Shown here: one piece after another, positions 11,943 to 62,074 of the stretch
Numbering within the stretch: the first letter of the stretch is position 1
Layout of the letters: each line of letters opens with the position of its first letter
DNA from: Basidiobolus meristosporus CBS 931.73
Taxonomy: Eukaryota; Fungi; Basidiobolomycota
Direction of reading: 5' to 3'
Length of the DNA stretch: 64,000 nt
NCBI GenBank assembly: GCA_002104905.1
Contig: MCFE01000245.1
Span: 51,345-115,344, forward strand
Translations under genes and position numbers: made by a program
Notes under the pieces: model-generated
Seen by the model: the letters and a program-made list of their open reading frames with translations, nothing else
Told to the model about the DNA's origin: nothing
The model's database searches: none

Positions 11943-13467
11943 TCATGGACAATTATGTTAACTCTCGCTCATCAAATATTTTCCTAGTAGCACCAATTTA
12001 TCCATTCATTTAAGCCGCGTTTATGTTTTATCTTATTTCTGAGCCAACAGGATGAAGCAAAGTGGATTCCGACTGTTCTTCCAAAGCATGTTATTGCCCA
12101 GGATAGCGCAACATACCTGTGGTGACTTATTGAGTTGCTGCGTGTTTGTTACATTCCCGGTCATATGCCTGATTGCTTTGATATGATGGCGGGAGAATTT
12201 CATCACGGATACTCTCCGGTCACAATCAGCCAAGTCTTCATAGCGTAGCATTAGTAATGCGGAAAGGTTCAAGAAGATCCAAGCTATTTTGGATACACAA
12301 CCTGTACTTAAGCCCAGAATATCCATAATAATGGAAATCTATGGCTGTAGGCCGCATACATCAGGACTGTGCACCTTTTTTGGGTAAACTCTTAATGACT
12401 TTTTGCATAGAATAGCGTCTCCCTATAGCGCCATCTACTATTTCCTAGTCTATTAACTACGTCTGGACTGGATGCACAAATCAGGCAAAGAGAGGGTTCG
12501 CATCGTTGTCTTAATAAATGCCATTAGGAGTGCGCAATGATTGATTGTTCCACTTGGGCAAACAACAACAGTAAACGTTGATGCTAAGCATAGAGCTCTC
12601 CTCAGAACAGCCACTGTCCGCTGCCGATGGACATGCTGATCTGTTCTGGGTAGATCTGTAAGGACGAGTGGTACTGCTTTCTTTCGCCCCAAAACTCAGC
12701 GTGCTTTGTGCCACCCATGATGATAATGTAGGCTTGCATTCATTTTAATTATGCAACCGAAGAACGAAGTACCGTTGTTAACCTTAGGTACCTTATCACC
12801 AGATCAAGCTTACACAAGGCCCAATTTGAAAGCCACTTCAAATTGCTCGGGATATTCTTGCCTGAGGGATTAGAGCGAGGTTATATTAGGCGATCAGAAT
12901 TATCTGTAGCATTGATCTCGACCAAGAGTGCCATCGCAACAAACGATTAATCTGTTGCATCACCATATATGTACGAGCAAACCAAAGGTCTGATCGGTCT
13001 GTGTAACGAATTCTATATATACCTATGCTTGAGTGGCAGCTTTCAAATGGATGCATACGCGATAACCTTTTGGGACGAGAACGGCTATTTCCTTACTTTC
13101 CAATTCTTGAGTCCTTGTGATCCCGGGTCAGTTGTTTGTCACACAGTAATTAATCTTTTCTCCCAAATTCGGAGCGACGACTAAGCTGTTGGCGCTCCAT
13201 TGCAATGGGGTAAAGTTAGCACCAATGGTGTCCAAGGAATATCACAGCTATTTTGAGCAGGATCGCTTTTGATGAATGTTAGAAGCTTTGTCTTACCAAA
13301 GATTTGAAGTTATCGCATTTTATCTGAACCTTAGGTTGCGATAGATATGGCATCCCCTCGACTTATATAAGGGCGCCATCCATATCCCACTCCCTCAGAA
13401 ATACAGCTACACTGCCTTGTCATATATCCTAGAAAGTTCCTTGTGTTCTCGTACATACATTGCCAAC

Positions 13468-15900
13468 ATGTCATCCGGGAATCCCTCCAGCAATTCCCCC
13501 ACTTACTCTAGTGACAATTCAAAATATAGTCCTGCCAGTACTCTAAGGAACCCAATATACTCCGTTAGCTCTGATGGCACGGTCATGGATGACGATGAAA
13601 TCTTTTGGGATGAAAAGTATCAATTACCACCCATTGAGAAGCCCATCACCTCACCCAAGGCTCAGAAGGTCTGGGTGAGAATCAACAGCGTTGTGGACTT
13701 CTTTTTCGTCAAAACATTTCTCAAGCCCTGTGGCCTTGACACCAAAGAGAAGCGTGAAGCATGGCGTGAGAAGATTCGTTACTTCCGTGCCATGGTGTTT
13801 CTCGTGCTGCTGATGATTGCCCTGCTGTTTGTAGTTCCTTTCTTCATTTGCAAGCAGTCCAGCGGCGCTGAGAAGGGAATCATCACGATCAAGACGCCGT
13901 ACTGTATGTTTCTGGATGTTGTCTATATAATCTTCATGGTGTGTGCAGTTGGAGTAATGGTTTTGAACGTGCTGGCCGCAATCATTGTTCAACGCTCTGG
14001 CAAGATCTACAGGTCCCCATTGGCCCCCGAAGTCAAGCCGAAGAAGCTTCTAGCTCTCCACATTCCTTGCTACAGTGAAAGCAAGGAGGTCATCTTGAAG
14101 ACAGTGAACTCGGTAGTTCAGAGCGACTACGACGACGAGTCCAAATTACTCTTTGTGGTGGCCGATGGGAATGTCACCGGTTCCGGAAATGACAAATCTA
14201 CACCAAGAATTCTGATTGAAGATATCTTCAAATGCACTGGTCAGGCTGAACCCCTCATGTATCAATCAGTTGGACATGGTGATCAACGACTAAATAAGGC
14301 CTGTGTCTACACCGGATATTACTCCCCAGATGATGAACCGGAGAGAAAGATCAAGTATCTTCTTGTTGTCAAGGTTGGTTTGGAGACTGAAAAAGGTGCC
14401 GCCAAACCAGGAAATCGCTCGAAGCGTGATTCTCAATTGATCGTATACAACTTCTTCAGAGAGGCAAATGGTTTCTTCCTTGATGACGTGCTACAGAAGA
14501 TCGAGACCGAGGAACAAAACCCGTTTATGAATACTGCTTATGAATTTGATAGCGCCAATGGATCCGTCAATGCTGAAATCGCTAGAACTAGTGCCTACAT
14601 CCAAGATTTATCTCTTTGGGGTACCGGTCCAGGGAACGGATATAGTGTCACCTCCCTCTCATCGTCTGCCTACGACTCTACACCAGGAACTCCGACACGT
14701 ATGCACAGTAGCATGTCAATCAACGGAAGCTACTTCAAGAGAAAGAAGACCCGTTTCAGCTGCCCCATGTTTGCCGAGATGTATAGTTCATTGAAGTTCA
14801 TTAACTGCAATGCCAAGGATGTAGAATACGTCTTGGTAGCCGATGCCGATACTTTCATTCGCCCAAATGGCCTTGATATCCTGGTGCATGCTCTAGAAGC
14901 TGATCCTAACTTATCGGGAGTATGCGGTGAAACCAAGGTTGAAAACCGTACCCAAAGTTATATTACTATGATTCAAGTTTTCGAGTATTTCTTGACTCAT
15001 TGTCTGCTGAAATCATTCGAGTCTTTCTACGCCAATGTACTGGTTCTTTCGGGTTGCTTTACAGTCTATCGACTAAAGCGTCATATCAAAGACCCTGAAA
15101 CCGGAAGAATCGTAGTCAAGCCAGCTGTACTTGATCCAAGAATCATGAGGGACTACATGGCCGAACCCAAGCTCATGAGAGAACACAATCTTCTGACTAT
15201 TGGTGAAGATCGCTATCTGTGCACTTTGGTTATCCGATACCTCAATGACATGCGTACCAGATATATTCCCACTGCAGTTTGTACTACCACGGTTCCTGAT
15301 ACGCTCAGCGTCCTCCTTTGTCAACGCAGAAGATGGACGAATTCGCTTATACACAACCATTTTGATTTGTTCATGAACCCACCCAAGTTCCCTTCACTAC
15401 GCATGAGACTCTGTATGAAACTGGTGATGCTCTCGGAGTTGTGGTCAGCAGCAGCCATTCCATTCTTCTTGCCATTTGGTTTCGTGATTGCCATCTACGG
15501 CTTCTGGACACATCTTACCTGGCTCTCATTGGCCTTTACATTGGTATTATTCTGCCTCCCTGGGCTGATCGCTTTCATGGCTGGGCGCTACTCGCAAGTC
15601 GGCTGGTGGCTAGTATTCTTGCTGGGATTACCCTTATGGGCGGTTGTCGTTCCATTATACAGTCTCTGGAAAATGGATGATTTTAGCTGGGGTAGCACAC
15701 GCCCAACCAATGGGCCAGCAATGGATGAGAAAGGCGGAGCCACTGGCGACTTTGTATCGGTTGAAATTCCTGAACCTGCTTATCAATCGCGCGACACCTC
15801 AATCTCCACCAACAGCTCCAATACTACCTCAAGAGGAAATTCGACCGAGGTGCCACCTGCACCTGGCCGCTTACCACCACCCAATAATAGTCGAGTATAA
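13468..15900 (+). CDS. Chitin synthase, Division 2 (class IV/V-like catalytic core, no myosin motor or cytochrome b5 domain); intronless
   Basis: Motifs PCYSES, DGNVTGSGND.STP, GNRSKRDSQ, DADT, CGET, QVFEY, GEDRYL, QRRRW; C-terminal TM helices. TATA-like TATATAA near 13364; first ATG at 13468. Confidence 0.95.
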   Translation: MSSGNPSSNSPTYSSDNSKYSPASTLRNPIYSVSSDGTVMDDDEIFWDEKYQLPPIEKPITSPKAQKVWVRINSVVDFFFVKTFLKPCGLDTKEKREAWREKIRYFRAMVFLVLLMIALLFVVPFFICKQSSGAEKGIITIKTPYCMFLDVVYIIFMVCAVGVMVLNVLAAIIVQRSGKIYRSPLAPEVKPKKLLALHIPCYSESKEVILKTVNSVVQSDYDDESKLLFVVADGNVTGSGNDKSTPRILIEDIFKCTGQAEPLMYQSVGHGDQRLNKACVYTGYYSPDDEPERKIKYLLVVKVGLETEKGAAKPGNRSKRDSQLIVYNFFREANGFFLDDVLQKIETEEQNPFMNTAYEFDSANGSVNAEIARTSAYIQDLSLWGTGPGNGYSVTSLSSSAYDSTPGTPTRMHSSMSINGSYFKRKKTRFSCPMFAEMYSSLKFINCNAKDVEYVLVADADTFIRPNGLDILVHALEADPNLSGVCGETKVENRTQSYITMIQVFEYFLTHCLLKSFESFYANVLVLSGCFTVYRLKRHIKDPETGRIVVKPAVLDPRIMRDYMAEPKLMREHNLLTIGEDRYLCTLVIRYLNDMRTRYIPTAVCTTTVPDTLSVLLCQRRRWTNSLIHNHFDLFMNPPKFPSLRMRLCMKLVMLSELWSAAAIPFFLPFGFVIAIYGFWTHLTWLSLAFTLVLFCLPGLIAFMAGRYSQVGWWLVFLLGLPLWAVVVPLYSLWKMDDFSWGSTRPTNGPAMDEKGGATGDFVSVEIPEPAYQSRDTSISTNSSNTTSRGNSTEVPPAPGRLPPPNNSRV

Positions 15901-18900: not shown

Positions 18901-19540
18901 ATTTGCCACTTGTCCAGATTGTCAACATGCCCAAAAACTACCTTAAGCAATATTTCCTAGTTCCGGCCAACCTTCGCAAACACTTCCAGATATGTAGCTC
19001 TGGTGTTTCGGACCGGTGTAAGCAGCCTAGAATTTATATCGACAGATGAATGGGACTATATATTACTCTACGTGCCTTCCGAGGTCTAAGGATCGGGACG
19101 CTTGTTTTAAGCAATCATGGATCCTAATGTGTTCCTTCGATTACTGTAAGATTGTACGAATGTTGGTTTAAAAGGAGGTCGAAATATCATTTCTTATCCT
19201 TCCTGGAGGTAACAGAGCACTGGAAAGGAAGAAAATTTATTGTATGTATACTGGATAGGAAAATATAATACAATTACCAAATAAAGATGCTGTCATAAGA
19301 AAGACGAGGTATTGGGATTTCATAACTCTACACTTGCGTGGGGTAAAGGCAGGGGGAGGCTAGTGATCAGAATACTGTCGCACAGCTCTTTCTTCTTGAT
19401 CGATATCACTTTGCATATCGCAAATGATATAGGATTGCCAATTCTCATTAAAAAAAGTTGCTTATACAAAATCAAAATTATCTCTTGTAGAGTCGTGCTC
19501 CTGAATCTCTTGTTGTGGGAGATTCATCGACTCTGTCACG

Positions 19541-22415
19541 TTAGCACCCGTCCACGTGGATCGTGATCTCCTCCGCTTCTACCCTTCGCCCGCTTGGGGC
19601 ATGCGGAGCTGAGATATTCGGCTGATATGAGGGATGTCTGTGCCAGTCTTGCATGATGCAGTTCAACGCGTCCCGGATACTCAGATGGAGGTAGCGATGT
19701 TCATCCTCAGGCCCATCATCCGGGTGCTTGGTGATACCCGAGGGCTCAATGCGCCTCAGCACATTCGACTTCAGCCCAACAAAGTGCAGCTCGAATCCTT
19801 GGTTCCCCGCATAGTTGCTCAGTTGCACCTTCAGATCCAACAGCCACTGTAGGCCAGCATAGTCGCAATGGTTCACGCTGCTGAAGTCCAGGATCACCGC
19901 TCGTAGGACTGGGAACTGAGACCCATTCGCCATCTTTTCCTTCTCTTGGATCACGTTCTCCCCGGCGATCTGGGTGTTGAGAGCGTTGTGGCTGCCCACC
20001 TTCAGCTCCTCATTTGGCCTTGGATATGCATTGGATGGGAGTCGGGGGATCAGGAAGTTCCGGATGCGTTGGATGCGGGTATCTTGGTCATCGGACCAGT
20101 TCTTCTCGGACCATGACTTCCCCGACCTCTCGGCAGGGTCGGTGGCAACGTAGGTGGCATTCAGCACCTTGTTCTTGAAGTACTCCCCGTTCAAGAAGGT
20201 GATCGACTCGGAGAAGCGGAAGATCACCACCCCTGGTGGGGCCGGGTATGTGGCCCAGTCACTCGACCACCGATCCACATAGATGTCCGAGTCGTCCACC
20301 GCCTGGCCCAGCATCTGCCATTTGGGTCGAGCAATCCGGTGAAGACTGATGATCAACGAGAACCCGGCTGCCACCCCGATGCCAGTCTGGATGTTCGTGA
20401 ACACGGTCAACAGGAATGCGAGTAAGCAGGCGACCATGTCAGTCCCTAGTGGTGGTGGACAAGTGGATGGTTAGCTTTTCTTCGTGGTCATTGCTCAAAT
20501 AGTGAGTGAGTTGCATCAGAGGGTGGAGGAGGAGAAGGCGGAGGAGGTAGGTGGTAGGGGAGGAACAACGCGGCAGAGAAGCAGGAAAGTATGCGTATGC
20601 GTGTGCGTGTGCGTGTGTATGTGCGTGTGTATGTGCGCATGTATGTGTGTTCGAGTGGATGGTCATTCTGTGAGGACTACTTACTTTGGATCTTCCACAG
20701 CTCACTGTACATCTTGTAGTCGTAGATCAATGGCATGATGCTCACAATGATCACCGAGGCGAGTGTTGCTTTGGGAACAAAGAACATCACTGGGGGTAGG
20801 AAGTTCATGCACAGCATCACAATGATGCTAGTCAAGATCCCACTCCCGGGTGTCTTGACTCCGGACTGCGAGATCACGGCTGACCGGGACAGCCCTCCTG
20901 TCGATGGGTATGCTCTGAAGAAGCTGCTTGACAGGTTGCATATCCCCACAGCTATCATCTCCTGGCTACTGTCGACCTTGTAATGGCCTTTTCGAGCTAC
21001 GATCCGAGAGAGGAGAATGAAGGAGGTGGTTAGCCTGACCTGCTGATAGGTAAGTAGGGCGAGGAGTGGTGAGGTGAGTAGTAGCCCTGATAGATTGGTG
21101 AAGTGGCTGTGACTCATGAGGTGTAGGTGAGTGTGGGTAGGCAGCTAGCAGACACTCTGATGCTCACTTCCCAGGAAATGACCACAAACTCGAGCTCAAG
21201 CCTGGCTTCAAGTGCACACGCACCATTCACATCACAACATGCACATCCGCACATCCACTCGCTTGGCTGCTCATCAACGCGCTCACTCACCACCACTCTC
21301 CTCAAGGTTCTTGATGAATGACTTACCATACGTCCGTGCTCCAGAGATGTGCTCAATGATCGCTACAAGAACGCCCACAGCAGCCGGCCCGACCACCTCA
21401 GATAGGAAGCCACTGTCCAGTCGAGGAAGTCCTGGCTGCGGAAACCCTTTTGGGATGTTGCCCAGCACGGTGACAACTCCGTTCCCTTGTGTCTTGGCCA
21501 CGATGAACGAGATCAGGGTGTAAAATATGACCACGATGGCACTGCGACCAATCCCCACCATTTTCATGGCGGGGTGGATGTAGCTGTACCTGGCGGAGAG
21601 TCGTTTCAGTATCATCATCATGGCTATCCCACTGAATCCAACCAGGGCGTCCTGCCAGCGAGTTCTGCTCAGCGCACTGCCAATGGCCTTCAGCACATCG
21701 ACCAGTGGCCCTTGAGCCTTGACCCCGGCCAATCCAAGCAATGATGGGATCTGAAGTGAGGGTGAGGGTGAGGGTGAAGGTGAAGGTGAAGGTGAAGATA
21801 AGGATGATCATAAGAATGGTGGCAGCAGCAGGAATAGTGGCAGTGGCAGTAGCAGTGGCAGTGGCAGTGACAGTGACAGTGGTGAAGAAGTGAAAGAAGC
21901 GAGGTTAGTTTCGTGCGATGCATTGGCGCCAGGTGTCACCTGCTCTCGCGTGATCCCTCTTCGCCGAGAAATGAAGCCTGAGCGCTTACCTGACTGAAAA
22001 AGATGGTCACCGCTGCCCCGGCGGTGAACCCTTTGGTCACTGGAATGGAGATCAGATCAAGAATGATCCCCAGCTTCAGCACGCCCAGACCGATCAGCAT
22101 ACAACCCATCAGGAAGGACATGGTAATCACACACTCAATCGGATCCAGTCCTCGCGACACCAGCGTGTCAAGGGTGATCCCCACATACAAGGAGAGTACC
22201 GCCGATGGCCCGATCGAGATGTCCCTGCTCGTGCCAAAGAAACAGTAGAGTGCAGTCCCCACGAAGCTTGAGTAGAGACCGTACTGCAGTGGGACTGTGG
22301 CCAGTTGAGCATATGCAAGTGCCTGTAGATTGTAAACATTGAGTAAGATGATTCATTCTGGCACACGAACACGCACGAACACACGAACACACGAACACAC
22401 ACACACACACACACA

Positions 22416-22450
<35 letters not shown>

Positions 22451-22717
22451 CCACATCCACTGTTTGTAGCATTTCTGCGGTGTGTATGTTACCCCGCAGC
22501 ATGTGTGTGAAGTGCTCGGTAACAAAAGTGCAAGCACACATACCTGAGGGACGATTAGAATACCGATGGTGATACCGGCAATCAGATCACCAATGAGCCA
22601 CTTTTTGTTGTAGTGAGGGGCCCATGTGACGAAAGGAAGGTGACGTCTAAGGATACCGTTAAAGGTGATCTCCCTGGTCTCGGTGACTTCCTGGATGAAT
22701 TCTGGTAACTTGATCAT
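19541..22717 (-). CDS. SulP/SLC26 sulfate permease with STAS domain, left arm copy; 5 exons
   Basis: GDLIAGITIG...PQ|ALAYA, YGLYSSF, GTSRDISIGP, TGGLSRSAV, VIFRFSESITFLN, and STAS motif ILDFSSVNHCD. Inverted near-identical partner at 23784-26927. Confidence 0.93.
22360..22448. repeat. Compound (CA)n(TC)n microsatellite in intron 1 of the left SulP copy
   Basis: Direct reading: acacacac... followed by tctctctc... Confidence 0.95.
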
Positions 22718-23783
22718 TTAATCCACAATTGTATTGACAGGTCTTAGCAACGAGCTAACTTCAAATAGGCTTTCTCTCCCTTAGAGACTCTCAGCGATAA
22801 AAACCTATACTTTCAGGTGTCGAGATTCGGGCCTTATATATTCCTTGACAAGGAGTTCTACATTAAGGCTTGAAGTGTTTGTATCAGCTCCATAAGTTCT
22901 ATTGCTTCTGGTAAAGACCATGGTTCAGAACCTTCCGTGGATTCATCATTTGAATGTTGCCCCTTAGTACAACCAGAATCCAACCCCTTTAAAGCTTATT
23001 CCTACTGAGAACCAATCCTGACTAATTTGGCAAGTGCTACTATAGGTTTGATTTTAATTACAAGATGAAGGGAAAGTTGAAACATACGTTTTTGGTGAGT
23101 GATTGTAACCGAGTTTCGACCATGGTTGGAGGCTCACGAGTGCTGGCAAGACATCTTACCATCGAGTAAGAGCTCTCCACTTGAGTTTCAATCATGGTTC
23201 GTAAGAGACCAAGGAGCCAATGATTTGTGTAGGGGGAGGAGAAGGAGTTGCTCGTACATATTTGGAATCTGAGTGTGGGGTGTAAGACATCTCCAGAGAA
23301 GAGTGAATGTGGAAAATAAACGGCATTATTGCATTGTACTGATTATTTCTACCATACCTACCCACTACGCTGGAGTATCAGTTCTACAAATGTAATTTTA
23401 ATTCGAGCTATGGCTAAATTTCAAGCAAGCAGTTAAGACAATGTATAACCTAGGAATATACATGAAAATAAATCATTTTGGATTCAGGGTGAATTCAAGT
23501 TCAAGAAACAAAGTCATGGGTGTTAAGGGGGAAATGGAGAACAGGTTCGTGGCCTAGTATTAAGTAACTTTTGAGTGAAACCACTGCTTTCTAGGACCGT
23601 ACCGAATCCATTCTAATTGATCTTTTGCTCCTTCTTGGAATACGCACTGGCGAATCCATCGAGAGAATAAATACCCTGGTGATTCTCATTTGGTACTCAC
23701 CGTTGGTTCATTTCTGGATTACTTGGGTTCTTTCCTATCTTACCACCAAATCAGCCTTTCGTTTTCCTAACTAGCGGCCTCAC

Positions 23784-24050
23784 ATGATCAAGCTGCCAGA
23801 ATTCATCCAGGAAGTCACCGAGACCAGGGAGATCACCTTTAACGGTATCCTTAGACGTCACCTTCCTTTCGTCACATGGGCCCCTCACTACAACAAAAAG
23901 TGGCTCATTGGTGATCTGATTGCCGGTATCACCATCGGTATTCTAATCGTCCCTCAGGTATGTGTGCTTGCACTTTTGTTACCGAGCACTTCACACACAT
24001 GCTGCGGGGTGACATACACACTGCAGTAATGCTACAAACAGTGGATGTGG

Positions 24051-24121
<71 letters not shown>

Positions 24122-26927
24122 GTGTGTGTTCGTGTGTTCGTGTGGCAGAATGAATCATCTTACTCAATGTTTACAATCTACAGGCACTTGCATATGCCCA
24201 ACTGGCCACAGTCCCGCTGCAGTACGGTCTCTACTCAAGCTTCGTGGGGACTGCACTCTACTGTTTCTTTGGCACGAGCAGGGACATCTCGATCGGGCCA
24301 TCGGCGGTACTCTCCTTGTATGTGGGGATCACCCTTGACACGCTGGTGTCGCGAGGACTGGATCCGATTGAGTGTGTGATTACCATGTCCTTCCTGATGG
24401 GTTGTATGCTGATCGGTCTGGGTGTGCTGAAGCTGGGGATCATTCTTGATCTGATCTCCATTCCAGTGACCAAAGGGTTCACCGCCGGGGCAGCGGTGAC
24501 CATCTTTTTCAGTCAGGTAAGCGCTCAGGCTTCATTTCTCGGCGAAGAGGGATCACGCGAGAGCAGGTGACACCTGGCGCCAATGCATCACACGAAACTA
24601 ACCTCGCTTCTTTCACTTCTTCACCACTGCCACTGCACTGCTACTGCTACTGCCACTATTCCTGCTGCTGCCACCATTCTTATGATCATCCTTATCTTCA
24701 CCTTCACCTTCACCTTCACCCTCACCCTCACCCTCACTTCAGATCCCATCATTGCTTGGATTGGCCGGGGTCAAGGCTCAAGGGCCACTGGTCGATGTGC
24801 TGAAGGCCATTGGCAGTGCGCTGAGCAGAACTCGCTGGCAGGACGCCCTGGTTGGATTCAGTGGGATAGCCATGATGATGATACTGAAACGACTCTCCGC
24901 CAGGTACAGCTACATCCACCCCGCCATGAAAATGGTGGGGATTGGTCGCAGTGCCATCGTGGTCATATTTTACACCCTGATCTCGTTCATCGTGGCCAAG
25001 ACACAAGGGAACGGAGTTGTCACCGTGCTGGGCAACATCCCAAAAGGGTTTCCGCAGCCAGGACTTCCTCGATTGGACAGTGGCTTCCTATCTGAGGTGG
25101 TCGGGCCGGCTGCTGTGGGCGTTCTTGTAGCGATCATTGAGCACATCTCTGGAGCACGAACGTATGGTAAGTCATTCATCAAGAACCTTGAGGAGAGTGG
25201 TGGTGAGTGAGCGCGTTGATGAGCAGCCAAGCGAGTGGACGTGCGGATGTGCATATTGTGATGTGAATGGTGCGTGTGCACTTGAAGCCAGGCTTGAGCT
25301 CGAGTTTGTGGTCACTTCCTGGGAAGTGAGCATCAGAGTGTCTGCTAGCTGCCTACCCACACTCACCTACACCTCATGAGTCACAGCCACTTCACCAATC
25401 TATCAGAGCTACTACTCACCTCACCACCCCTCGCCTTACTTACCTATCAGCAGGTCAGGCTAACCACCTCCTTCATTCTCCTCTCTCGGATCGTAGCTCG
25501 AAAAGGCCATTACAAGGTCGACAGTAGCCAGGAGATGATAGCCGTGGGGATATGCAACCTGTCAAGCAGCTTCTTCAGAGCATACCCATCGACAGGAGGG
25601 CTGTCCCGGTCAGCCGTGATCTCGCAGTCCGGAGTCAAGACACCCGGGAGTGGGATCTTGACTAGCATCATTGTGATGCTGTGCATGAACTTCCTACCCC
25701 CAGTGATGTTCTTTGTTCCCAAAGCAACACTCGCCTCGGTGATCATTGTGAGCATCATGCCATTGATCTACGACTACAAGATGTACAGTGAGCTGTGGAA
25801 GATCCAAAGTAAGTAGTCCTCACAGAATGACCATCCACTCGAACACACATACATGCGCACATACACACGCACATACACACGCACACACGCATACGCATAC
25901 TTTCCTGCTTCTCTGCCGCGTTGTTCCTCCCCTACCACCTACCTCCTCCGCCTTCTCCTCCTCCACCCTCTGATGCAACTCACTCACTATTTGAGCAATG
26001 ACCACGAAGAAGAGCTAACCATCCACTTGTCCACCACCACTAGGGACTGACATGGTCGCCTGCTTACTCGCATTCCTGTTGACCGTGTTCACGAACATCC
26101 AGACTGGCATCGGGGTGGCAGCCGGGTTCTCGTTGATCATCAGTCTTCACCGGATTGCTCGACCCAAATGGCAGATGCTGGGCCAGGCGGTGGACGACTC
26201 GGACATCTATGTGGATCGGTGGTCGAGTGACTGGGCCACATACCCGGCCCCACCAGGGGTGGTGATCTTCCGCTTTTCCGAGTCGATCACCTTCTTGAAC
26301 GGGGAGTACTTCAAGAACAAGGTGCTGAATGCCACCTACGTTGCCACCGACCCTGCTGAGAGGTCGGGGAAGTCATGGTCCGAGAAGAACTGGTCCGATG
26401 ACCAAGATACCCGCATCCAACGCATCCGGAACTTCCTGATCCCCCGACTCCCATCCAATGCATATCCAAGGCCAAATGAGGAGCTGAAGGTGGGCAGCCA
26501 CAACGCTCTCAACACCCAGATCGCCGGGGAGAACGTGATCCAAGAGAAGGAAAAGATGGCGAATGGGTCTCAGTTCCCAGTCCTACGAGCGGTGATCCTG
26601 GACTTCAGCAGCGTGAACCATTGCGACTATGCTGGCCTACAGTGGCTGTTGGATCTGAAGGTGCAACTGAGCAACTATGCGGGGAACCAAGGATTCGAGC
26701 TGCACTTTGTTGGGCTGAAGTCGAATGTGCTGAGGCGCATTGAGCCCTCGGGTATCACCAAGCACCCGGATGATGGGCCTGAGGATGAACATCGCTACCT
26801 CCATCTGAGTATCCGGGACGCGTTGAACTGCATCATGCAAGACTGGCACAGACATCCCTCATATCAGCCGAATATCTCAGCTCCGTCATGCCCCGAGCGG
26901 GCGAAGGGTAGAAGTGGAGGAGATTAA
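23784..26927 (+). CDS. SulP/SLC26 sulfate permease with STAS domain, right arm copy; exons about 23784-23957, 24184-24516, 24743-25166, 25497-25808, 26044-26927
   Basis: Same motifs as the left copy. The five GT-AG exons sum to 2127 nt, an intact frame. An extra T at 26886 shifts the last codons relative to the left copy. Confidence 0.93.
24053..24140. repeat. Compound (GA)n(GT)n microsatellite in intron 1 of the right SulP copy
   Basis: Direct reading. Run lengths differ from the left copy. Confidence 0.95.
24620..24740. repeat. Hexamer repeats (CCACTG-like, CTTCAC, CCTCAC) in SulP intron 2; mirrored at about 21755-21885
   Basis: Direct reading of the tandem hexamers running up to the splice acceptor. 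Confidence 0.85.
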
Positions 26928-27383
26928 GATTCACGTGGACGAGCGCTAATGTGGCAATCAGTGGATGAACCGCTGCAGACGAATTAGGGGTGTTGGAAGC
27001 GTATGAGATAATTTTGACTTTGTACAAGTAACTGTTCATTTTAACCAAGTATAGGCACTTCTATCGAATTCTTCATATGTAAAGCTAACACCGGACAAGG
27101 CAGGGGAGAATTTGGTAATGGTCTCAGTTAGGACACAAATCATACCATGTTCACTCACTACCGTATACATACACATACAGTGCCATTTACATACCACCAC
27201 GGACACTGTAAACGGAGCGACACCGCTTAAATAAATCATGCATCTCTTTTTAAAACCACCACTTGAAATTGACAATTAGAAGCAGGAGTTGGGTGAAAAT
27301 GTAGTGCTTATTCAAGTTCACTAAATTTTATTTGCCATCTGAGGTGTACTGTTGTTGTTCAACCAAGGTTGACCTAATTCAAC

Positions 27384-27790
27384 TTAGTTCTTGCCAGATT
27401 GGGACTTGATGACCTTCTTGACAATCTTTTGTTCTTCGATGAGGAAGGCACGGACGATGCGCTCACGAACGCAGTGGCCACAGCGACTACCACCATAGGC
27501 ACGTTGGACGGTCTTTTGGCGCTTGGAGATACGAGCGTATTCACGAGGGCGGAGGGCGGGGACCTAGATACCATAACACGTTAGCTCCATCAGATGATCT
27601 CTCGAAATGAGGGGTTGTGTGGAGCACTTACACCGGCAAGAGCCATTCCGCAGTCACCGCAACGGGGAGCACTGCCAGGCTTCTTTTCGTGCAAGTAGGT
27701 AAGCTTGCCACCAGGAGTCTTAACGATGCGGACACGGTTAGACTTGGTGTTGTAGGAGAGACGACGGCGGTAAGTGACACGTTGAGCCAT
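27384..27790 (-). CDS. RPL34: 60S ribosomal protein eL34; one coding intron plus a probable 5'-UTR intron (about 27807-27950)
   Basis: [33 protein letters not shown], then exon 2 ...[34 protein letters not shown] donor near 27631. Confidence 0.96.
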
Positions 27791-28537
27791 TGCGACAGTA
27801 ACTACTAAACAGACCACAGGGGTTTCGTTAGTTGATGAATAAGAGAATGGGACTTGGCGAGGAAGGCGAATGGATGCATCGATTTGGGTAAAGATGAGGA
27901 TGCTTGGGAACGGGAAAGTCAAAGATATTCAGTGCACTCGATGAACGTACCTCGTTGAGTTTTTCAACTGGATGTAGGCAAAAGGGAGAGCCACATTAAC
28001 ATCTCCTTTCCCTTTTGTAGGTCGACCGATTTGCTGTATCCTGGATATCCGTACCCGCCGATGATTGGCTGGTAAGAGCAAATTTCCACATCACTTTTTT
28101 TTTACCGCCTCGATTGAATTCATTGATCGAAGGGATGGACGGTTGTGCGGCTGCCGATGAAAATTTCCCCATCCACCATCACCAACCGTCGCTTGGAGGA
28201 GATATCCAGGCATTGGGAGTGTGCAGTTTCCATTCTCACCCACAGGCGGAGTGCGGCGTTGTAGGCTGAAATTTGGTTGATAGATTTTTTTATTACTATA
28301 CATATTATGAAAAGATATTGGAAAGTGAGCCAAACGAATATGAATGTAATATAGTGACGTAGAAGACGGTACACAAAAGTAAAGTCTCGGAAGAATCGAG
28401 GGGAAAATCAAATAAACTAGAAGATGAATGGCTCCATAGAAGGCATAAAAGAGGTATTCGTGCTTTGGTTGACCAGGGGACGGTGTGTTTCACCGCTGCT
28501 GGCCAGAAGGGTAGCATGATCTCTTGGAGAACGTGGT

Positions 28538-29932
28538 TTACCATTCGAAATCTCCGTTGACTTTATGGAAGAGATAATCCTTTCCGTTGACTAGCATGAT
28601 TCCATCTTTGAGAACACACTTCCACTTGTTTTTTGTGCGCGTGACTTTATCGTACTGGCACAACACGATATGCTCCATTTCCTCGCCACCATCCTCACCA
28701 CGATCGTCATCATCGGTGTCGTCCAGGTCGGAGTTGATCGCATCTTCAGAGTCCACAACTGGCTCCGCTTCATCACCCTCCTCCTCGCCTTCCGCATCTT
28801 CATCATCATCATCATCTTCCCCATCAACTTGAGGAATCTTGCGCGCGTGCTTGGCGAGAGCTCTGGTGGCAATCATCGCATCAATTTCCTAAGGAAGCCC
28901 GTGTGAGATCATGAATGAGTATATGGTTGGTAGTGAGCTACTCACTTGAGTGGACATATCCGCGGGGCCATCGGTTTGTGGGATGTTGTGGTTGGACTTT
29001 GGATCTACTGTTCGTTATTAATATCTCTCGCCACCATGGGTGTCTTGACCGAAGAAAGAAAATCGACTTACCACCGTTACTACCGGTTGGCAACATGATG
29101 GTGTTATAGTAAGACGCAGTTGCCTGCGTCGGCTGGGGGAGCTGAACCTGGTCGTCATTACGTGGTGGCTAAATGGAACTTTGTTGTTATTCGCCTGGTC
29201 GTAAACACTCTATCTTGCCCACGATCGTTACCATGTAACTTTGGGGAGCACCGACACCATTCTCCTGTTTCAAAGCGCTGCTAGCCGATGCCAAGGTAGC
29301 CAGGTTGGCAGCTGCCACACCATGAGGTTGCTGTTGCTGGTATTGCTCAGCATACGCGTACTAAAATGGATACTCTGTGAGATTATGACAAGAAGTGGGG
29401 TCGGGTTTAGGCCTTGCTACCTCTTGAGCCTCTGTAGGGGCTGGAGCATGTGGATATTGGTCAGCGTATTGTACCGGATTTCCGGACTCATCGTAATAGG
29501 CATTAGTATAACCTTCAGTAACTTGGGGATCCGAAACTACAAAATTCGCCACTCTAGCGTTGGCGATCTTGGTCTCCCAAGACTGCACAGAAGAATAGGG
29601 TTAGTGTGCAGGCAATTTTGACGTGGAAATAGGAACCCCACCCGTTGCAATTCTTGAAGGATCGACTCATCAACGCCCATGTCTTCGAAGTCCTTTTGAA
29701 CAGTGCTAATCACTTCGTCGATAACGTGTCTGTACACACCGGCCTTCAAACAGAATAAACGGTTAGAATGGGAATCCACGACAGGTATAGAAAGCGGGGT
29801 AGGTAAAATCGCTCTACAGTTGTGATCGAAGCCTTGTTGAAGACTAATCTAGACGCAACGACGTACAGAAAACCAGTGGCGACCCGGTGTGCGAAAGAAT
29901 ATTTATCAACATACCACAATACTGTTCGACAT
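28538..29932 (-). CDS. TOA1: Transcription factor IIA large (alpha/beta) subunit; multi-exon
   Basis: Micro first exon MSNSIV|GTATGT, then AGVYRHVIDEVI...LQELQR|SWETKI; acidic linker; C-terminal LCQYDKVTRTKNKWKCVLKDG...GDFEW. Confidence 0.93.
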
Positions 29933-53672: not shown

Positions 53673-53905
53673 TGTTGTAAGAGTTTGGAGATATTGGAAA
53701 TGTTTGGGAGAACAAGTAGATTATGTGGTTTTCACTTAATAATTTATTGAATGTGAAAGTAGTATTTATACTTTTACATGGTCCTGTCATTACAAACATG
53801 TAGAATAGGTTAGGGAAGGTCCCAAGAACATGTGTGCAAAGTTTGGGGCTGTTTGGACAACTTTGAGAATTCTCATGTTCTGGGTAAATATTCTAAGTAA
53901 ATCCC
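53673..53905 (-). mobile_element. Inverted partial LTR fused directly to the pol of copy A
   Basis: About 230 bp reverse complement of the LTR with a small internal deletion; joins TATTGACTCTGGAGC (protease IDSGAS). Confidence 0.9.
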
Positions 53906-53906
53906 C

Positions 53907-56900
53907 TATTGACTCTGGAGCTTCTCAACACTTTACACACCAAAAAGAACTTTTTACCCAATATCAAGAAATTCCAATTAAGAAGGCTTTCATGGGTGAC
54001 GGTAGAACACTTGATGCAGTGGGAGAAGGAACTATCCTAGTAAACCTAAGAAGCAGTGAAGGAAGCCATACACTGACTTTCAAAGAAGTACTCTATGAAC
54101 CAGAAATAGCCAAGAACCTACTATCTGTAAGCAAGGCCACTGCAGAAGGACTCAGTTTCAGCTTTGACAATTCTGGATGCAAGATCACTGATCAAAATGG
54201 TACCCATATTGCTTTGGATATCAGAGATCAGAATCTATACAACTTGACTTATATTCCATTGTATTTGGAAGCCAATATAAGTAACTTAAGCAAAGAAACA
54301 CCAATGCTTTGGCACAGGAGATTTGGGCACATCAATTTTGATTATTTGTGCAAAATGATCAAAGATCAGCTAATTTCTGGAGTAAAAATTGATCACCCAG
54401 CTAATTTGCAGCACTGTGAAGCCTGCATATATGTGAAACAAGCCAGACAACCATTCAAGAGCTCTGGGTTAATCAAAACTAAGAAAAAATTAGATCTAAT
54501 TCACTCAGATCTGTGTGGACCTGTGCAAAATTTATCCTTAGGCGGGATGAAGTATTTAATCACTTTTATTGATGATTATACAAGATACACATGGATCTAC
54601 TTCATGGAGAGAAAGGAAGAAGCTCTGTCTAAGTTCAGGGAGTTTAAAGCCATGGTGGAGAGAGAAACTGGTGAAAAAATCAAGAAAATACGCTCTGACA
54701 ATGGTGGAGAATATACCTCAAAACTCTGCATCCACTTATGCAAAATTCATGGGATAAAGCAAGAGACTACTGTACCATACTCCCCACAGCAAAATGGAGT
54801 AGCAGAACATGCTAACAGATCAATAATTGGTATGGCAAGATCTATGATCCATGATCAAAAATTATCCTATGATATTTGGGTGGAATCAGATGCACTGACG
54901 TATATCTTAAAGATGGGAGTTATAGCAGAATACTTTGTGATTCTACTCTGATTGAAGCATGGCATGGATACAGACTAAGTGCAGAACATCTAAGAATATT
55001 TGGGTGTACAGCATATGCCAAGAAACTGCCCGGAAATCAGTCAAAATTTGAGCCAAAAAGTGTAAAATGCATATTTTTGGGCTACTGCAATGAGAGTAAA
55101 GTATACAGACTCTACAATTCCAAAGCAAAGAAGCTAATCAAGTCCAGGGATGTGTTGTTTGATGAAAATTCAAAATTCTCACAAAAAATGACATCAGATA
55201 ATGACAAAAATCTGATGTCAAGTCCACCAATTGTCAGGATTGAATCAGAGCAAAACAGTGAAAATCTTTTCACTCCAGAGGACTCTACAACCATAGTTCA
55301 GCCAGAATCAGTGCCCAGGAATATCCCAGAAGTGATCATTTCAGTATCAAAAGCCCGGAGATCCAATTGGACAAGAAATAGCCCAAATTACTATATCAAT
55401 GAGGGTACAAACTTAGCCTATGCCTATTCAGTCCACATTGATGAACACCAGACTGTAAAAGAGGCCCTAAATAGCCCTCAGATGAAGTTTGGAGATCTAC
55501 AATGATTGAGGAATATCAGGCCCTGATGGAAAATCAAACTTGGGCCTTGGTCAAATTACCAATCAACCAAAATTTAATTGGATGCAGATGGGTCTTCAAG
55601 ACAAAATACAAGGCTGGTGGTACAATTGAAAGATACAAAGCAAGACTTGTAGCCAAAGGATACTCTCAAACAAAAGGACTTGACTATACTGAGACCTTTG
55701 CACTGGTAGCCAAGTTTAATTCCATCAAATTAATATTGGCTATTGCAGCCAAATATTAGTTTTTTATTCATCAAGTGGATGTAAGAGCTGCATTTTAGAA
55801 TGGGGAGCTTGATGAGGATGTGTATATGGACCAGCCTGATGGGTCTGTTGACTAAGATAACCCCCATTTGGTCTGCAAGTTCAAAAAGTTTCTATATGGT
55901 CTTAAACAATCACCAAGAGCCTGGAATTGGAAGATAGGTTTGTATTTGGAATCTTTGAGTTTCAAAAGGAGTAATGCTGACTATAGTATATACTACAAGC
56001 CAGATAGAGCAAATCCAGTTCTATTAGCTCTATATGTGGCTGATCTGATTATAGCCACCAATAACCTAGAATCATTGGAAGAGACTAAATCCAGCCTATC
56101 TAAGGAGTTCAAGATGTCCAATCTAGGAGAACTCAGTTACTACTGAGGGATTAGGTACTCCATAGACAGGACTACCCAGACTATTACCCTAAGCCAATCC
56201 AAGTATATTAATGATATACTAAAGAAGTACAAAATGGAAGACTGTAAACCAGCAGCTACCCCAATAGAGACAAACCTTAACTTGGTCAAAACTCAGCCAA
56301 ATCAAGAGAGCTTGGTGCCATCTGAAAGCCATGACTTTCCTTATCAATCTATGGTCAGCAGTCTGATGTATATCATGCTTGGAACATGTCCAGATATCTT
56401 ATATTCAGTGGGAGCTGTCAGCTAACATAATCAGAACTATGGATCTGATCATATTGCAGCCATTTAGCGGATTTTTAGATACCTAAAAGGAACTGCTGAT
56501 ATCTGCTTAAGATATACTTATAAGGATTCAGAACAGGATCTTGTGGAATACTCTGATGCTGATTGGGGACAAAACTTGGAAGACAGAAGATCCACCACAG
56601 GATACACCTTTCTTTACTGTAAAGGAGCAATCTCATGGAATTCAAGAGAGCAGCCAACCATGGCACTTTCTACCACAGAGGCAGAGTATATGGCAGCCTG
56701 TGAAGCTGCAAAAGAAGCAATGTGGTTGAGAAAGCTTTTTACAAATTTATGCCTATGTCAAAAAACACCTATTACTTTATTTCAAGATAATCAAGGATGT
56801 AAGCAATTAGGTAGAAATCCAACTTTTCATGCTAGAACCAAGCACATAGATATCAGATATCAGTTAATATGTGAAGCTATAGAGAATAACTTAGTTAGCT

Positions 56901-57372
56901 TAGCTTACTGTCCTACAGATGAAATGATTACAGATATATTCACCAAACCATTAGCCAGAGACAAGTGTGAATATCTTGGGTCAAAATTAGGACTAGTCAG
57001 TATGAGCATTTAGCTGAGTGGGAGTGTTGTAAAAATTTGTAATTCCACCTAAATACTCACCTAACTCAGTCACTTAGATTGTTATCTTCAAATCCTAGAG
57101 AATACTGACCAAATTCCATGTTGGGATTTACTTAGAACATTTTCACCAAAGTACCAGGTACCCAGAACATGGAAATTCTCAAAGTTGTCCAACCAACCCC
57201 AAACCTGCACACATGTTCTTGGGACCTTGCTTAATTTATTCTATGTGCTTGTTATGCCAAGACCAGGTAAAAGTATAAACACTACTTTTACATTCAACAA
57301 ATCACTAAGTGAAAATTACATAATCTACTTGTTCTCCCAATCACTTCCAATATCTCTAAGACTCTTACAACA
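53907..57372 (+). mobile_element. Ty1/copia copy A: 5'-truncated, degenerate PR-INT-RT-RNaseH, PPT and 3' LTR (57025-57372)
   Basis: [43 protein letters not shown] split across frames by stops and frameshifts. PPT GCTGAGTGGGAG then LTR TGTTGT...ACAACA. Confidence 0.93.
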
Positions 57373-57903
57373 AATATAAGGCCCTGAAACTTGTCTGTCA
57401 GGCTATGCAGGATGGCAACTATCACATCCTCATCAGTAGTTGGTATGCTCACAGATTCCATTTCATCTACCAGCAGGGAGATTCCGTTAATTAGATTTTT
57501 CATTTCTTCTCCTGGCAGCATCTTTGTAGTAAATTTTTTTTGTCTCAGATACATTTTCTTAGCAGCTGAACATGACTGGTAGGTGTCTTCTAATGCCTTC
57601 CAGGCATTCTTTGCTGTTTTTGTTCTTGAGCATTGAATTAGCAATTTGTCCTTAACATTAAGGCAAATGCAGTTACAGGCACCTTGTTCTTTCTTCTGGT
57701 ACTTTAAGGCTTCCTCTCCCAAGCTTTTAGGAGGGCATTCTTCTCCCATGACAATATCCCAAATGCCTCTTTCTTGTAGCAGCATCTTCATTTTCACCTC
57801 CCACACTTGGTAGCTAGTTCCATCCAACTTTTCAGCAGAGGGAAAAATTCCAGTAATAGCAGTAGTAGATACTGCAGAGAGTGAGAGCTTGGGGCTCATA
57901 ACC
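57373..57903 (-). mobile_element. Inverted 5' fragment of another copia copy (D): PBS, gag start codon and gag N-terminus
   Basis: Minus strand reads GGTTATGAGCCCC then MSPKLSL...EKLDGTSYQVWEVKMKMLLQERGIW...DKFQGL; clearly diverged from the overlapping gag of copy B. Confidence 0.9.
57892..57903 (-). other. Primer-binding site GGTTATGAGCCC complementary to the anticodon arm of initiator tRNA-Met
   Basis: Exact complement of GGGCUCAUAACC in fungal tRNA(iMet); the same PBS type as yeast Ty5 and Drosophila copia; preceded by CA. Confidence 0.85.
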
Positions 57904-60900: not shown

Positions 60901-62074
60901 AAGTATATTCAAGATATACTAAAGAAGTACAAAATGGAAGACTGTAAACCGGCAGCTACCCCAATGGAGACAAACCTTAACTTGGTCAAAACTCAACCAA
61001 ATCAAGAGAGCTTGGTGCCATCTGAAAGCCCTGACTTTCCTTATCAATCTATGGTCGGCAGTCTGATGTATATCATGCTTGGAACACGTCCAGATATCTC
61101 ATATTCAGTGGGAGTTGTCAGCCAACATAATCAGAATTATGGATCTGATCATATTGCAGCAGTTAAGCGGATTTTTAGATACCTAAAAGGAACTGCTGAT
61201 ATCTGCTTAAGATACACTTATAAGGATTCAGAACAGGATCTTGTGGGATACGCTGATGCTGATTGGGGACGAAATTTAGAAGACAGAAGATCCACCACAG
61301 GATACACCTTTCTTTACTGTAAAGGAGCCATCTCATGGAATTCAAGAAAGCAACCAACCGTAGCACTTTCTACTACAGAGGCAGAGTATATGGCAGCCTG
61401 TGAAGCTACAAAAGAAACAATGTGGTTAAGAAAGCTCTTTACAGATTTAGGCCTATGTCAAAAAACGCCTATTACTTTATTTCAAGATAATCAAGGATGT
61501 ATACAATTAGGTAGAAATCCAACTTTTCATGCTAGAACCAAGCACATAGATATTAGACATCATTTCATACGTGAAGCTATAGAGAATAACTTAGTTAGCT
61601 TAGTTTACTGTCCTACAGATGAAATGATTGCAGACATATTTACCAAACCATTAGCTAGAGACAAGTTTGAATATTTTAGGTCAAAATTAGGACTAGTCAG
61701 TATGAACATTTAGCTGAGTGGGAGTGTTGTAAAAATTTGTATTTTCCACCTAAATATTCACCTAACTTAGTCACTTAGATCATTACCCTCAAATCCTAGA
61801 GAATACTGACCAAATTCCTTGTCGGGATTTACTTAGAATATTTTCACCAAAATGCCAGGTACCCAGAACATGAAAATTCTCAAAGTTGTCCAAACAGCCC
61901 CAAACTTTGCACACATGTTCTTGGGACCTTCCTTAACCTATTCTACGTGTTTGTAATGCAAAGACCATGTAAAAGTATAAATACTACTTTTACATTCAAT
62001 AAATCATTAAGTGAAAACCACATAATCTACTTGTTCTCCCAATCACTTCCAATATCTCCAAGACTCTTACAACA
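57904..62074 (+). mobile_element. Ty1/copia copy B: uninterrupted gag-pol ORF (to 61713) missing only the gag N-terminus and 5' LTR; PPT; 3' LTR 61725-62074
   Basis: Zinc knuckle CNYCKRKGHTSDRC, protease IDSGAS, integrase D-D-E (SDLCGP, SDNGGEY, NGVAER), RT QMDVKTAFLNG and YVDDL, RNaseH DADW, EAEY, DNQG, ADIFTK, in PR-INT-RT-RH order. Confidence 0.97.

Follow-up and report, generated by a model that had tools for sequence, protein, structure and literature searches.

The window analysed here, a 64,000-nt stretch of contig MCFE01000245.1 from Basidiobolus meristosporus CBS 931.73, contains a head-to-head pair of SulP/SLC26 genes, each of 708 codons and four introns. The genes, their neighbours and the DNA between them are:

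13446 to 15900, plus strand: chitin synthase gene, the left-hand synteny neighbour
19541 to 22717, minus strand: left SulP gene, with exon 1 at 22717-22544, exon 2 at 22322-21990, exon 3 at 21750-21327, exon 4 at 20996-20685 and exon 5 at 20445-19541
22389 to 22448, no strand: (CA)n(CT)n microsatellite in intron 1 of the left copy, with its partner in the right arm at 24053-24121 and a 6-nt indel between the two
22718 to 23783, no strand: unique spacer of 1066 nt, the upstream region of both SulP genes
23784 to 26927, plus strand: right SulP gene as assembled, with exon 1 at 23784-23957, exon 2 at 24184-24516, exon 3 at 24743-25166, exon 4 at 25497-25808 and exon 5 at 26044-26927
27414 to 27790, minus strand: ribosomal protein L34e gene, the right-hand synteny neighbour, placed by annotation and by blastn against loci L003 and L005 (see below)

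The inverted repeat arms run from 19523 to 22717 and from 23784 to 26969, and align over 3205 columns at 98.0% identity, with 36 mismatches and 10 gap openings. In both copies the five exons are separated by four GT-AG introns of 226-330 nt; the left gene ends in a stop codon at 19541-19543, and the right-hand exons exactly match database model P0003. The public annotation models (588 aa, and 483 aa marked partial) are too short for two near-identical 708-codon genes. The pair thus consists of cis paralogues lying inverted around unique DNA, as in settings of interlocus conversion, and the original prediction of two near-identical divergent SulP genes about 1.07 kb apart is borne out by the arms, the exon structure and the domain content alike.

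To place the genes in a family, we ran a Pfam profile search exon by exon on the arms. Exons 2, 3 and 4 match Sulfate_transp (PF00916; E = 2e-21, 2e-17 and 4e-34), jointly covering positions 40-370 of the 380-position profile, and exon 5 carries a C-terminal match to STAS (PF01740; E = 2e-11). Both domains that mark SulP/SLC26 proteins are therefore present, and the pair shares with fungal SulP/SLC26 sulfate permeases a Sulfate_transp membrane domain followed by a C-terminal STAS domain. Relatives in B. ranarum are annotated as 'Sulfate permease 2', and identity to animal SLC26A11 is 36-37%; on the strength of family membership and the names of these relatives, sulfate (anion) transport is the putative activity of both products. 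Basidiobolus has an enlarged complement of the family: B. ranarum has at least four more paralogues, and B. meristosporus at least three.

Most of each gene falls within a segment of nearly uniform similarity, which we read as a probable conversion tract:

19604 to 22705, no strand: putative converted core of the left arm, from codon 5 to codon 695 and including all four introns
23796 to 26885, no strand: putative converted core of the right arm, counterpart of the left core

Between codons 5 and 695 there are 10 synonymous differences and no non-synonymous ones, giving a dS of 0.020 (501 synonymous sites) and a dN of 0 (1584 sites). As had been claimed from a smaller set of checked sites (tta/ctg, gct/gcc and cca/ccg among them), all 10 exon substitutions before codon 696, held in nine codons, are synonymous. 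Both SulP copies are under purifying selection, none of the 10 substitutions being non-synonymous. All four introns align as well, and differ at 16 of 1010 sites (1.6%), close to the synonymous distance; the introns have thus been homogenised along with the exons. We considered whether an uneven spread of differences might mark several recent tracts, but the longest difference-free run (528 nt, in exon 5, against about 2.5 differences expected) is not significant (P ~0.08, a rough Poisson estimate from the core rate).

What distinguishes this locus is the sequence just outside the core on its 3' side, where homology continues at much lower identity:

19395 to 19540, minus strand: 3' UTR of the left copy, homologous to the 3' flank of the right copy; outer limit of the duplicated unit
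26886, plus strand: 1-nt insertion relative to the left copy, at the outer end of the putative converted core; it frameshifts the last codons of the right copy
26887 to 27101, plus strand: older layer of the right arm that probably escaped conversion, made up of the former CDS tail (26887-26949) and 3' UTR to 27101

Near-identity stops at the 1-nt indel (19603 on the left, 26886 on the right), 21 codons short of the ancestral stop. From there, homology extends for roughly 210 nt, to 19395 and 27101. The 63-nt CDS tail is 89% identical between copies (JC distance 0.12), and the left 3' UTR blocks at 19523-19540 and 19395-19485 (3' UTR nt 1-18 and 56-146) are 78% identical (JC distance about 0.26), with no alignment past 19394. 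In the 81 nt past the core, 11 sites differ (13.6%, vs 1.6% in introns; Fisher p = 1e-6), a step of about 15-fold in neutral distance at 26886/19603, and the Smith-Waterman score of the 3' flank is 36-38 vs a null of about 10.5 ± 1.8, the 3' UTR of the left copy scoring 36 vs 10.3 ± 1.8. A tract is thus far more alike than the homologous sequence that adjoins it. Profiling identity through the UTRs, the check proposed at the outset, accordingly returned a stepped profile, from about 2% divergence in the core to the tail and then to the 3' UTR. Several details of the original prediction need adjustment in consequence: its right-hand edge at 26886 stands, while the left-hand one, put at about 19580, belongs at 19603; near-identity is not bounded by the coding region, since it ends inside the CDS; and of the UTRs described as almost unalignable, the 5' flanks are indeed unrelated, but the 3' UTRs align in blocks.

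The insertion at 26886 gives the right copy a new 13-aa tail and a stop at 26925-26927. Translated in the old frame, the right copy still gives ...VEVEEIKIHVDER and a stop at 26947-26949, so that the frameshift is either recent or a consensus error of the assembly, which was built from PacBio reads (PMC7466969). In the left copy the ancestral tail survives at the C-terminus (...VEAEEITIHVDGC), matching B. ranarum P0002 and the paralogues. Two other origins for the diverged shoulder were rejected. Conserved 3' UTR elements are ruled out, as the blocks occur in neither the B. ranarum orthologue nor the L005 paralogue, both of which were compared; the 3' UTRs are hence alike through common ancestry, not through deep conservation of an element. 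That a third paralogue served as donor is likewise disfavoured, with L005 only about 75% alike there and its alignment stopping sooner.

The inner edge is of a different kind. The two arms cease to match precisely at the start codon (GGATTAA|ATG in the left copy, CCTCAC|ATG in the right), an abrupt boundary that had been noted beforehand, as had the uniqueness of the spacer; our comparison of the two spacer halves agrees on the latter point, giving a Smith-Waterman score of 15 vs a shuffle null of 14.2 ± 2.0. Set against the DNA upstream of the L005 paralogue and of B. ranarum genes A and B, the spacer likewise scored at shuffle level each time. On this side no flank is homologous, and all that differs outside the tract is codon 4, at 9-11 nt from the ATG. 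Its two synonymous changes (TTA/CTG) would suit a small remnant of older sequence at the 5' end too; given how short the older layer is in all (about 210 nt plus 12 nt), its age can be given only roughly. The abrupt edge had been suggested to be a once-homologous UTR that has decayed. We disagree with that suggestion: a 5' flank of the same age should be as detectable as the 3' UTR, which survives at 78%, yet none is found, and the missing 5' homology would most simply be read as the breakpoint of the duplication. The Caenorhabditis paralogue review carries the same caveat, that ORF-restricted identity can come from the limits of a duplication (PMC3966223). No mechanism explains why the inner breakpoint should coincide with the ATG, which counts against the breakpoint account; for a breakpoint placed at random in an upstream region of roughly 1.4-2 kb, the chance of landing so close to the start codon, within a few nt, is well below 1%. 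A retrocopy of an unspliced transcript is disfavoured, with poly(A) remnant and target-site duplication both absent at 27101 and 23783. In the spacer, put forward in the original prediction as a possible bidirectional promoter, a scan for sulfur-regulon and TATA motifs found none above expectation. The spacer has no Rfam match, and no tRNA was found.

The two edges together bear on an alternative in which a single inverted duplication, about 2% old, produced the pair with no conversion at all, so that the limits of identity are those of the copied segment. The clean inner breakpoint with no flanking homology, the uniform divergence across the core (0.016 in introns vs 0.020 at synonymous sites) and the precedent for ORF-restricted identity arising in this way (PMC3966223) would all suit such an event. 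It nevertheless leaves unaccounted for both the double-hit codon 4 and some 210 nt of significant homology past the core that is 6-15 times more diverged, and we regard it as improbable. A step in divergence inside a longer homologous segment points instead to a duplication of greater age, upon which at least one conversion was later superimposed.

Synteny indicates which of the two copies is likely to be the parent. The paralogous locus L005 and B. ranarum L003 both have the order TFIIA-RepA3-L34e(+)-SulP(+), and B. ranarum L004 and L001 have SulP(+) followed by chitin synthase(-); the chitin synthase of the window is 77% identical to the B. ranarum gene adjoining the orthologous SulP. The gene order of the window is that of these syntenic loci with the right SulP copy inserted in reverse, and the left copy, between L34e and chitin synthase, has the same position and orientation as in L005, L003 and L001. 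On the basis of this synteny with the paralogous locus and B. ranarum, we infer that the left copy is parental and that the right copy, a gene-sized inverted insertion, was derived from it; the spacer, by synteny, is the left copy's own ancestral upstream region. The same comparison speaks to whether the palindrome might be a fold-back, a set of collapsed arms or a chimeric join introduced in assembly. The use of PacBio data, together with a 1-nt frameshift that may be a consensus error, gives some reason to ask. Set against this, the arms are separated by a unique spacer and differ by their 36 substitutions and 10 gaps, either end of the 115-kb scaffold is tens of kb away, both flanks are in ancestral order and orientation relative to each other, and the exon differences are all synonymous, unlike random errors. 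An artefact is, in our judgement, very improbable indeed. A point against the account of probable conversion is that the pair is known from one genome, as assembled.

The comparison with B. ranarum also raises the question of how old the duplication might be. In a tree of the family built from database proteins, the window gene groups with B. ranarum gene A (92/90), and L005 with L003 (95/96); B. ranarum yielded a single full orthologue copy, and it is with that one gene that the window pair groups. Synonymous divergence between B. meristosporus and B. ranarum is saturated (pS 0.70-0.76). At the end of B. ranarum contig L004, nt 3-28 are the exact reverse complement of 26 nt of exon 5 (nt 2780-2805), placing an inverted exon-5 fragment 1008 nt upstream of the ATG of the orthologue, vs the 1066-nt spacer here. 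Given this fragment, the duplication may be much more ancient than one would judge from the 3' UTR distance. Inverted contig ends as a habit of the assembler were considered and set aside, as three other whole B. ranarum contigs have none. A search via L34e paralogues for the B. ranarum contig adjoining JASJQH010009839.1 found only L006 and L007, neither of them syntenic, and no second STAS-bearing protein fragment turned up in B. ranarum.

One way to accommodate the fragment is an inverted copy already present in the ancestor of B. meristosporus and B. ranarum, maintained by repeated conversion in B. meristosporus with tract ends eroding inward, and truncated in B. ranarum by loss of the inner part of the second copy. 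Conversion would then have kept the B. meristosporus arms alike over the whole divergence of the genus. The position of the fragment (1008 vs 1066 nt), the three contigs with no such inverted ends and the layered divergence at the 3' end (0%, 11%, then 22%) are in its favour. It is weakened by a fragment that is visible over 26 nt only, and whose inner edge lies in mid exon 5 rather than at the ATG, which calls for a further rearrangement, as well as by the failure to find a second STAS-bearing fragment; moreover, with between-species dS saturated and the 3' UTRs of the arms at only about 0.26, the UTRs too would have had to undergo conversion until fairly recently. We consider such an ancient palindrome unlikely, while giving it some credence. 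Alternatively, the right copy might have been built in two steps, beginning as an older, partial inverted copy that took in the 3' UTR and the 3' portion of exon 5, such as may survive in B. ranarum; break repair would later have lengthened it, using the left gene as template as far as the start codon, before end joining sealed the product. Such a course would account for a B. ranarum fragment abutting about 1 kb of unrelated upstream DNA, for the similar distances and for the absent 5' flank homology. Yet the boundary between old and young sequence lies at 26886 and not at the equivalent of the fragment edge (about 26105-26130), requiring extra conversion; synthesis would have to halt at the ATG for no known reason; and the upstream DNAs of B. 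meristosporus and B. ranarum do not align. This course strikes us as distinctly improbable.

The history that we consider probable is accordingly an older inverted duplication followed by arm-to-arm conversion of nearly the whole SulP gene, with the left copy parental and the right one derived. A unit reaching from the start codon, the presumed original breakpoint, to about 150 nt past the stop would have been duplicated in inverted orientation and inserted between L34e and the parental gene, 1066 nt upstream of the latter, giving the head-to-head pair. Much later, at least one arm-to-arm conversion would have let one copy overwrite the other, exons and introns alike, between about codon 5 and codon 695. 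Some 2% neutral divergence would have been gained since, with purifying selection keeping both proteins identical, while codons 1-4 and about 210 nt at the other end (the 21-codon tail and 3' UTR) would have escaped conversion and retained the older divergence. The central claim of the original prediction, a core homogenised by arm-to-arm conversion after an older inverted duplication, is in this respect upheld.

Its analogy to Y-chromosome palindromes holds less well. Those palindromes have arms of kilobases to more than 1 megabase that are >99.9% alike, carry many genes and lie on a non-recombining chromosome. The SulP arms, by comparison, span 3.3 kb, hold one gene and are 98% identical, with about 2% neutral divergence in the core and no sign of a non-recombining setting. 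Continuing concerted evolution of the Y-chromosome kind is not called for, as a single conversion event is enough for the data. The resemblance lies in the inverted arms, the unique spacer and the arm-to-arm conversion, features also described for sex-chromosome palindromes of primates and other animals, in which conversion between the arms homogenises their genes (PMC3403216). Closer parallels are found in Caenorhabditis, where hsp16 modules form an inverted repeat with a 416-bp unique spacer, and where the ORFs of col-12 and col-13, intron included, are 99.5% identical between dissimilar flanks (PMC3966223). Like these, the SulP genes are small, gene-sized cis copies with near-identity over ORF and introns and with dissimilar flanks, for which conversion is the proposed cause, and head-to-head orientation is among the cases described (PMC3966223). 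The SulP pair differs in its host, an early-diverging fungus, in having four introns, all of them apparently converted, and in keeping a more diverged homologous 3' layer, so that telling conversion from recent duplication needs no second species.

As an instance of gene conversion, the SulP pair is clear-cut but unexceptional. With an older, unconverted layer preserved beside the core, one genome suffices here to separate conversion from recent duplication, and the pair illustrates how a promoterless inverted copy the size of a gene can come to occupy the parental upstream region. By itself it changes nothing known about gene conversion; its wider value hinges on such pairs proving unusually frequent and persistent in Basidiobolus.

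The two SulP/SLC26 genes form an inverted repeat (19523-22717 against 26969-23784) that shows 36 mismatches and 10 gap openings in an alignment of 3205 columns (98.0% identity); across most of its length, identity between the arms is 96-100% in 100-column windows. The original prediction of a near-identical inverted gene pair with a unique spacer is thus borne out. In each arm the encoded permease has the Pfam domain Sulfate_transp, spread over exons 2-4, and the domain STAS, in exon 5. The exon map was set by open frames and by exact match to P0003, the B. meristosporus CBS 931.73 database model of the right copy, which right-gene exon 5 matches at 100%. The locus of this protein (L002; scaffold MCFE01000245.1, 115,344 bp) begins at 13862 in the window. 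Searches used single exons by reference, the tree used database proteins, and codon classes were read by coordinate in a script.

Features of the inverted pair
19541-22717, minus strand: left copy, its exon layout mirroring that of the right copy
22718-23783: spacer, 1066 nt of unique sequence
23784-23957, plus strand: right copy, exon 1
24184-24516, plus strand: right copy, exon 2
24743-25166, plus strand: right copy, exon 3
25497-25808, plus strand: right copy, exon 4
26044-26927, plus strand: right copy, exon 5 as assembled

Every GT/AG site is intact in both copies, and annotation of the B. ranarum orthologue and of one paralogue places the start at the same ATG (23784 and 22717 here); both genes look like full-length genes of 708 codons each. 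The public models, one of 588 aa (19703-22639) and one of 483 aa that is marked partial (23862-26327), begin 26 codons within the open frame and end before the 3' end.

Up to codon 695, the exons differ by 10 substitutions in 9 codons, all 10 synonymous, which extends what had been claimed for the substitutions checked earlier; core dS is 0.020 (501 synonymous sites) and dN is 0 (1584 sites). Across the four introns, 16 of 1010 aligned sites (1.6%) carry substitutions and there are a few indels; the core's neutral divergence is therefore even. The arms differ in length at a (CA)n(CT)n microsatellite (6 nt), in intron 2 (a 12-nt unit) and in intron 4 (4 nt). These counts indicate that the two proteins have been kept identical since the arms last matched. 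They also bear on whether the pair is an assembly artefact, which is unlikely: the arms lie away from the ends of their scaffold (115 kb), dozens of sites tell them apart, syntenic genes flank them in the correct relative orientation, and their exon differences are all synonymous, as errors would not be.

At the outer edge, near-identity stops where a 1-nt indel falls (19603 on the left arm, 26886 on the right), not at about 19580 as first proposed for the left arm, and homology continues past it. The 63 nt directly beyond are 89% alike and the 3' UTR (nt 1-18 and 56-146) is 78% alike (JC 0.26), with no alignment past 19394/27102. Within the first 81 nt past the indel 11 sites differ, against the 16 of 1010 in introns (Fisher p = 1e-6). 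Similarity between the 3' flanks is significant (36-38 versus about 10.5 ± 1.8) and has no counterpart in the 3' flanking sequence of either the B. ranarum orthologue or L005, the paralogous SulP locus of the same genome, which argues for descent rather than a deeply conserved element.

The left-copy tail, ...VEAEEITIHVDGC, matches those of the B. ranarum protein P0002 and other paralogues. The extra base at 26886 in the right copy, relative to left 19603, shifts the frame into a novel 13-residue tail as assembled (stop 26925-26927). The old frame is still open there (...VEVEEIKIHVDER) and stops at 26947-26949, the same place as in the left copy, so the shift is either very recent or a consensus error of the PacBio assembly (PMC7466969). 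Over the 21 codons of the tails, the old frame gives 3 changes that are synonymous and 4 that are not, far above the core level.

At the inner edge, homology ends one base before the ATG, and the spacer halves, each oriented as its gene's upstream region, show no likeness (score 15 versus 14.2 ± 2.0 for shuffles). The UTRs had been called almost unalignable, which describes the unrelated 5' flanks but not the 3' UTR with its blocks of 78% likeness. The sole exon-1 difference, TTA versus CTG at codon 4 (9-11 nt from the ATG), needs two synonymous steps, which is unlikely at the core rate; the recent tract therefore probably leaves out the first four codons. Since a co-duplicated 5' flank should have remained about as alike as the 3' UTR, the ATG edge most likely marks the breakpoint at which the duplicated unit ended, and the diverged 5' UTR beside identical introns loses its force as proof of conversion. 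The same caveat, that an edge at the ORF may be the limit of the copied unit, has been raised for Caenorhabditis paralogues (PMC3966223). A scan of the 1066-nt spacer for sulfur-regulon and TATA motifs gave none above expectation.

One recent duplication as the origin of the pair is incompatible with the 3' step in divergence. That step fits an older inverted duplication, at a neutral distance of at least about 0.26, which would have been followed by at least one gene conversion spanning codon 5 to codon 695, about 0.02 ago. A single conversion suffices for the data; they support the old duplication and arm conversion of the original prediction, and sustained concerted evolution would go beyond what they require. 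Gene conversion within palindromes is a classic feature of sex chromosomes (PMC3403216), and converted adjacent paralogues, among them inverted pairs with short unique spacers and converted introns, have long been known (PMC3966223). The window pair is real and cleanly resolved, yet of an already known sort.

Gene order is TFIIA, RepA3, L34e(+), SulP(+) in both L005 and the B. ranarum contig L003. The B. ranarum contigs L004 and L001 adjoin exactly to give one gene, downstream of which lies a chitin synthase in convergent orientation. On the opposite strand, the order in the window is TFIIA, L34e(+), right copy(-), spacer, left copy(+), chitin synthase(-). Taking out the right copy regains the ancestral order, with about 1.4 kb from L34e to the left ATG (versus 1.7-2.2 kb in L005 and L003), so the left copy is parental; gene order identifies the right copy (23784 to about 27101) as an inverted gene-sized insertion. 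The small gene RepA3 (PF08661), which separates TFIIA from L34e in L005 and L003, gives no tblastn match in the whole window and was apparently lost from this version of the region (its site would be 27800-28540).

Several other elements occur here. A short element upstream of L34e (window 27945-28019, L003:4990-5062, L005:7648-7694, L006:5612-5654) keeps 82-92% identity over paralogous loci and both species despite saturated synonymous sites, and probably serves as a ribosomal-protein promoter element. Close to the chitin synthase gene, a 48-nt block (window 13112-13158, L001:7769-7816) is 92% identical between species. The AT-rich stretch at 53685-64000 holds three direct copies of one unit (90-97% identity, spacings of about 4.7 and 3.3 kb) and a 364-nt inverted pair (57374-58267), and a stretch related to it (77-93% identity) recurs downstream of the SulP paralogue (L005:13207-14604); the unit is probably a dispersed repeat or transposon.

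In the protein tree, gene A of B. ranarum is the partner of the window gene (92/90) and L003 that of L005 (95/96), making the two SulP lineages older than the species split. Synonymous sites are saturated between the species (pS 0.70-0.76), so B. ranarum is too distant to date either the 2% or the 26% event. The second lineage keeps a block about 230-330 nt upstream of the ATG across species (L003:7534-7634, L005:9697-9792; Smith-Waterman 69 versus 18.5 ± 1.9). The palindrome-bearing lineage has no conserved upstream block between species, which fits a rearranged upstream region.

In B. ranarum, the first 28 nt of L004 (JASJQH010009839.1, 2807 nt) include 26 nt that exactly match, as reverse complement, the contig's own exon-5 sequence at 2780-2805, within its last 28 nt; this far end of the contig meets the start of L001 with zero overlap. 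Three other whole contigs of the same assembly lack such inverted ends. The B. ranarum orthologue thus has an inverted SulP fragment upstream, 1008 nt from its ATG, a distance near the 1066 nt of the window spacer; the inner edge of the fragment falls mid exon 5, and a contig adjoining the fragment end of L004 was looked for and not found. Should this fragment descend from the duplication that made the window pair, the pair would be ancient and the originally proposed model would hold in its strong form; otherwise, inverted copying at this locus would have occurred twice.
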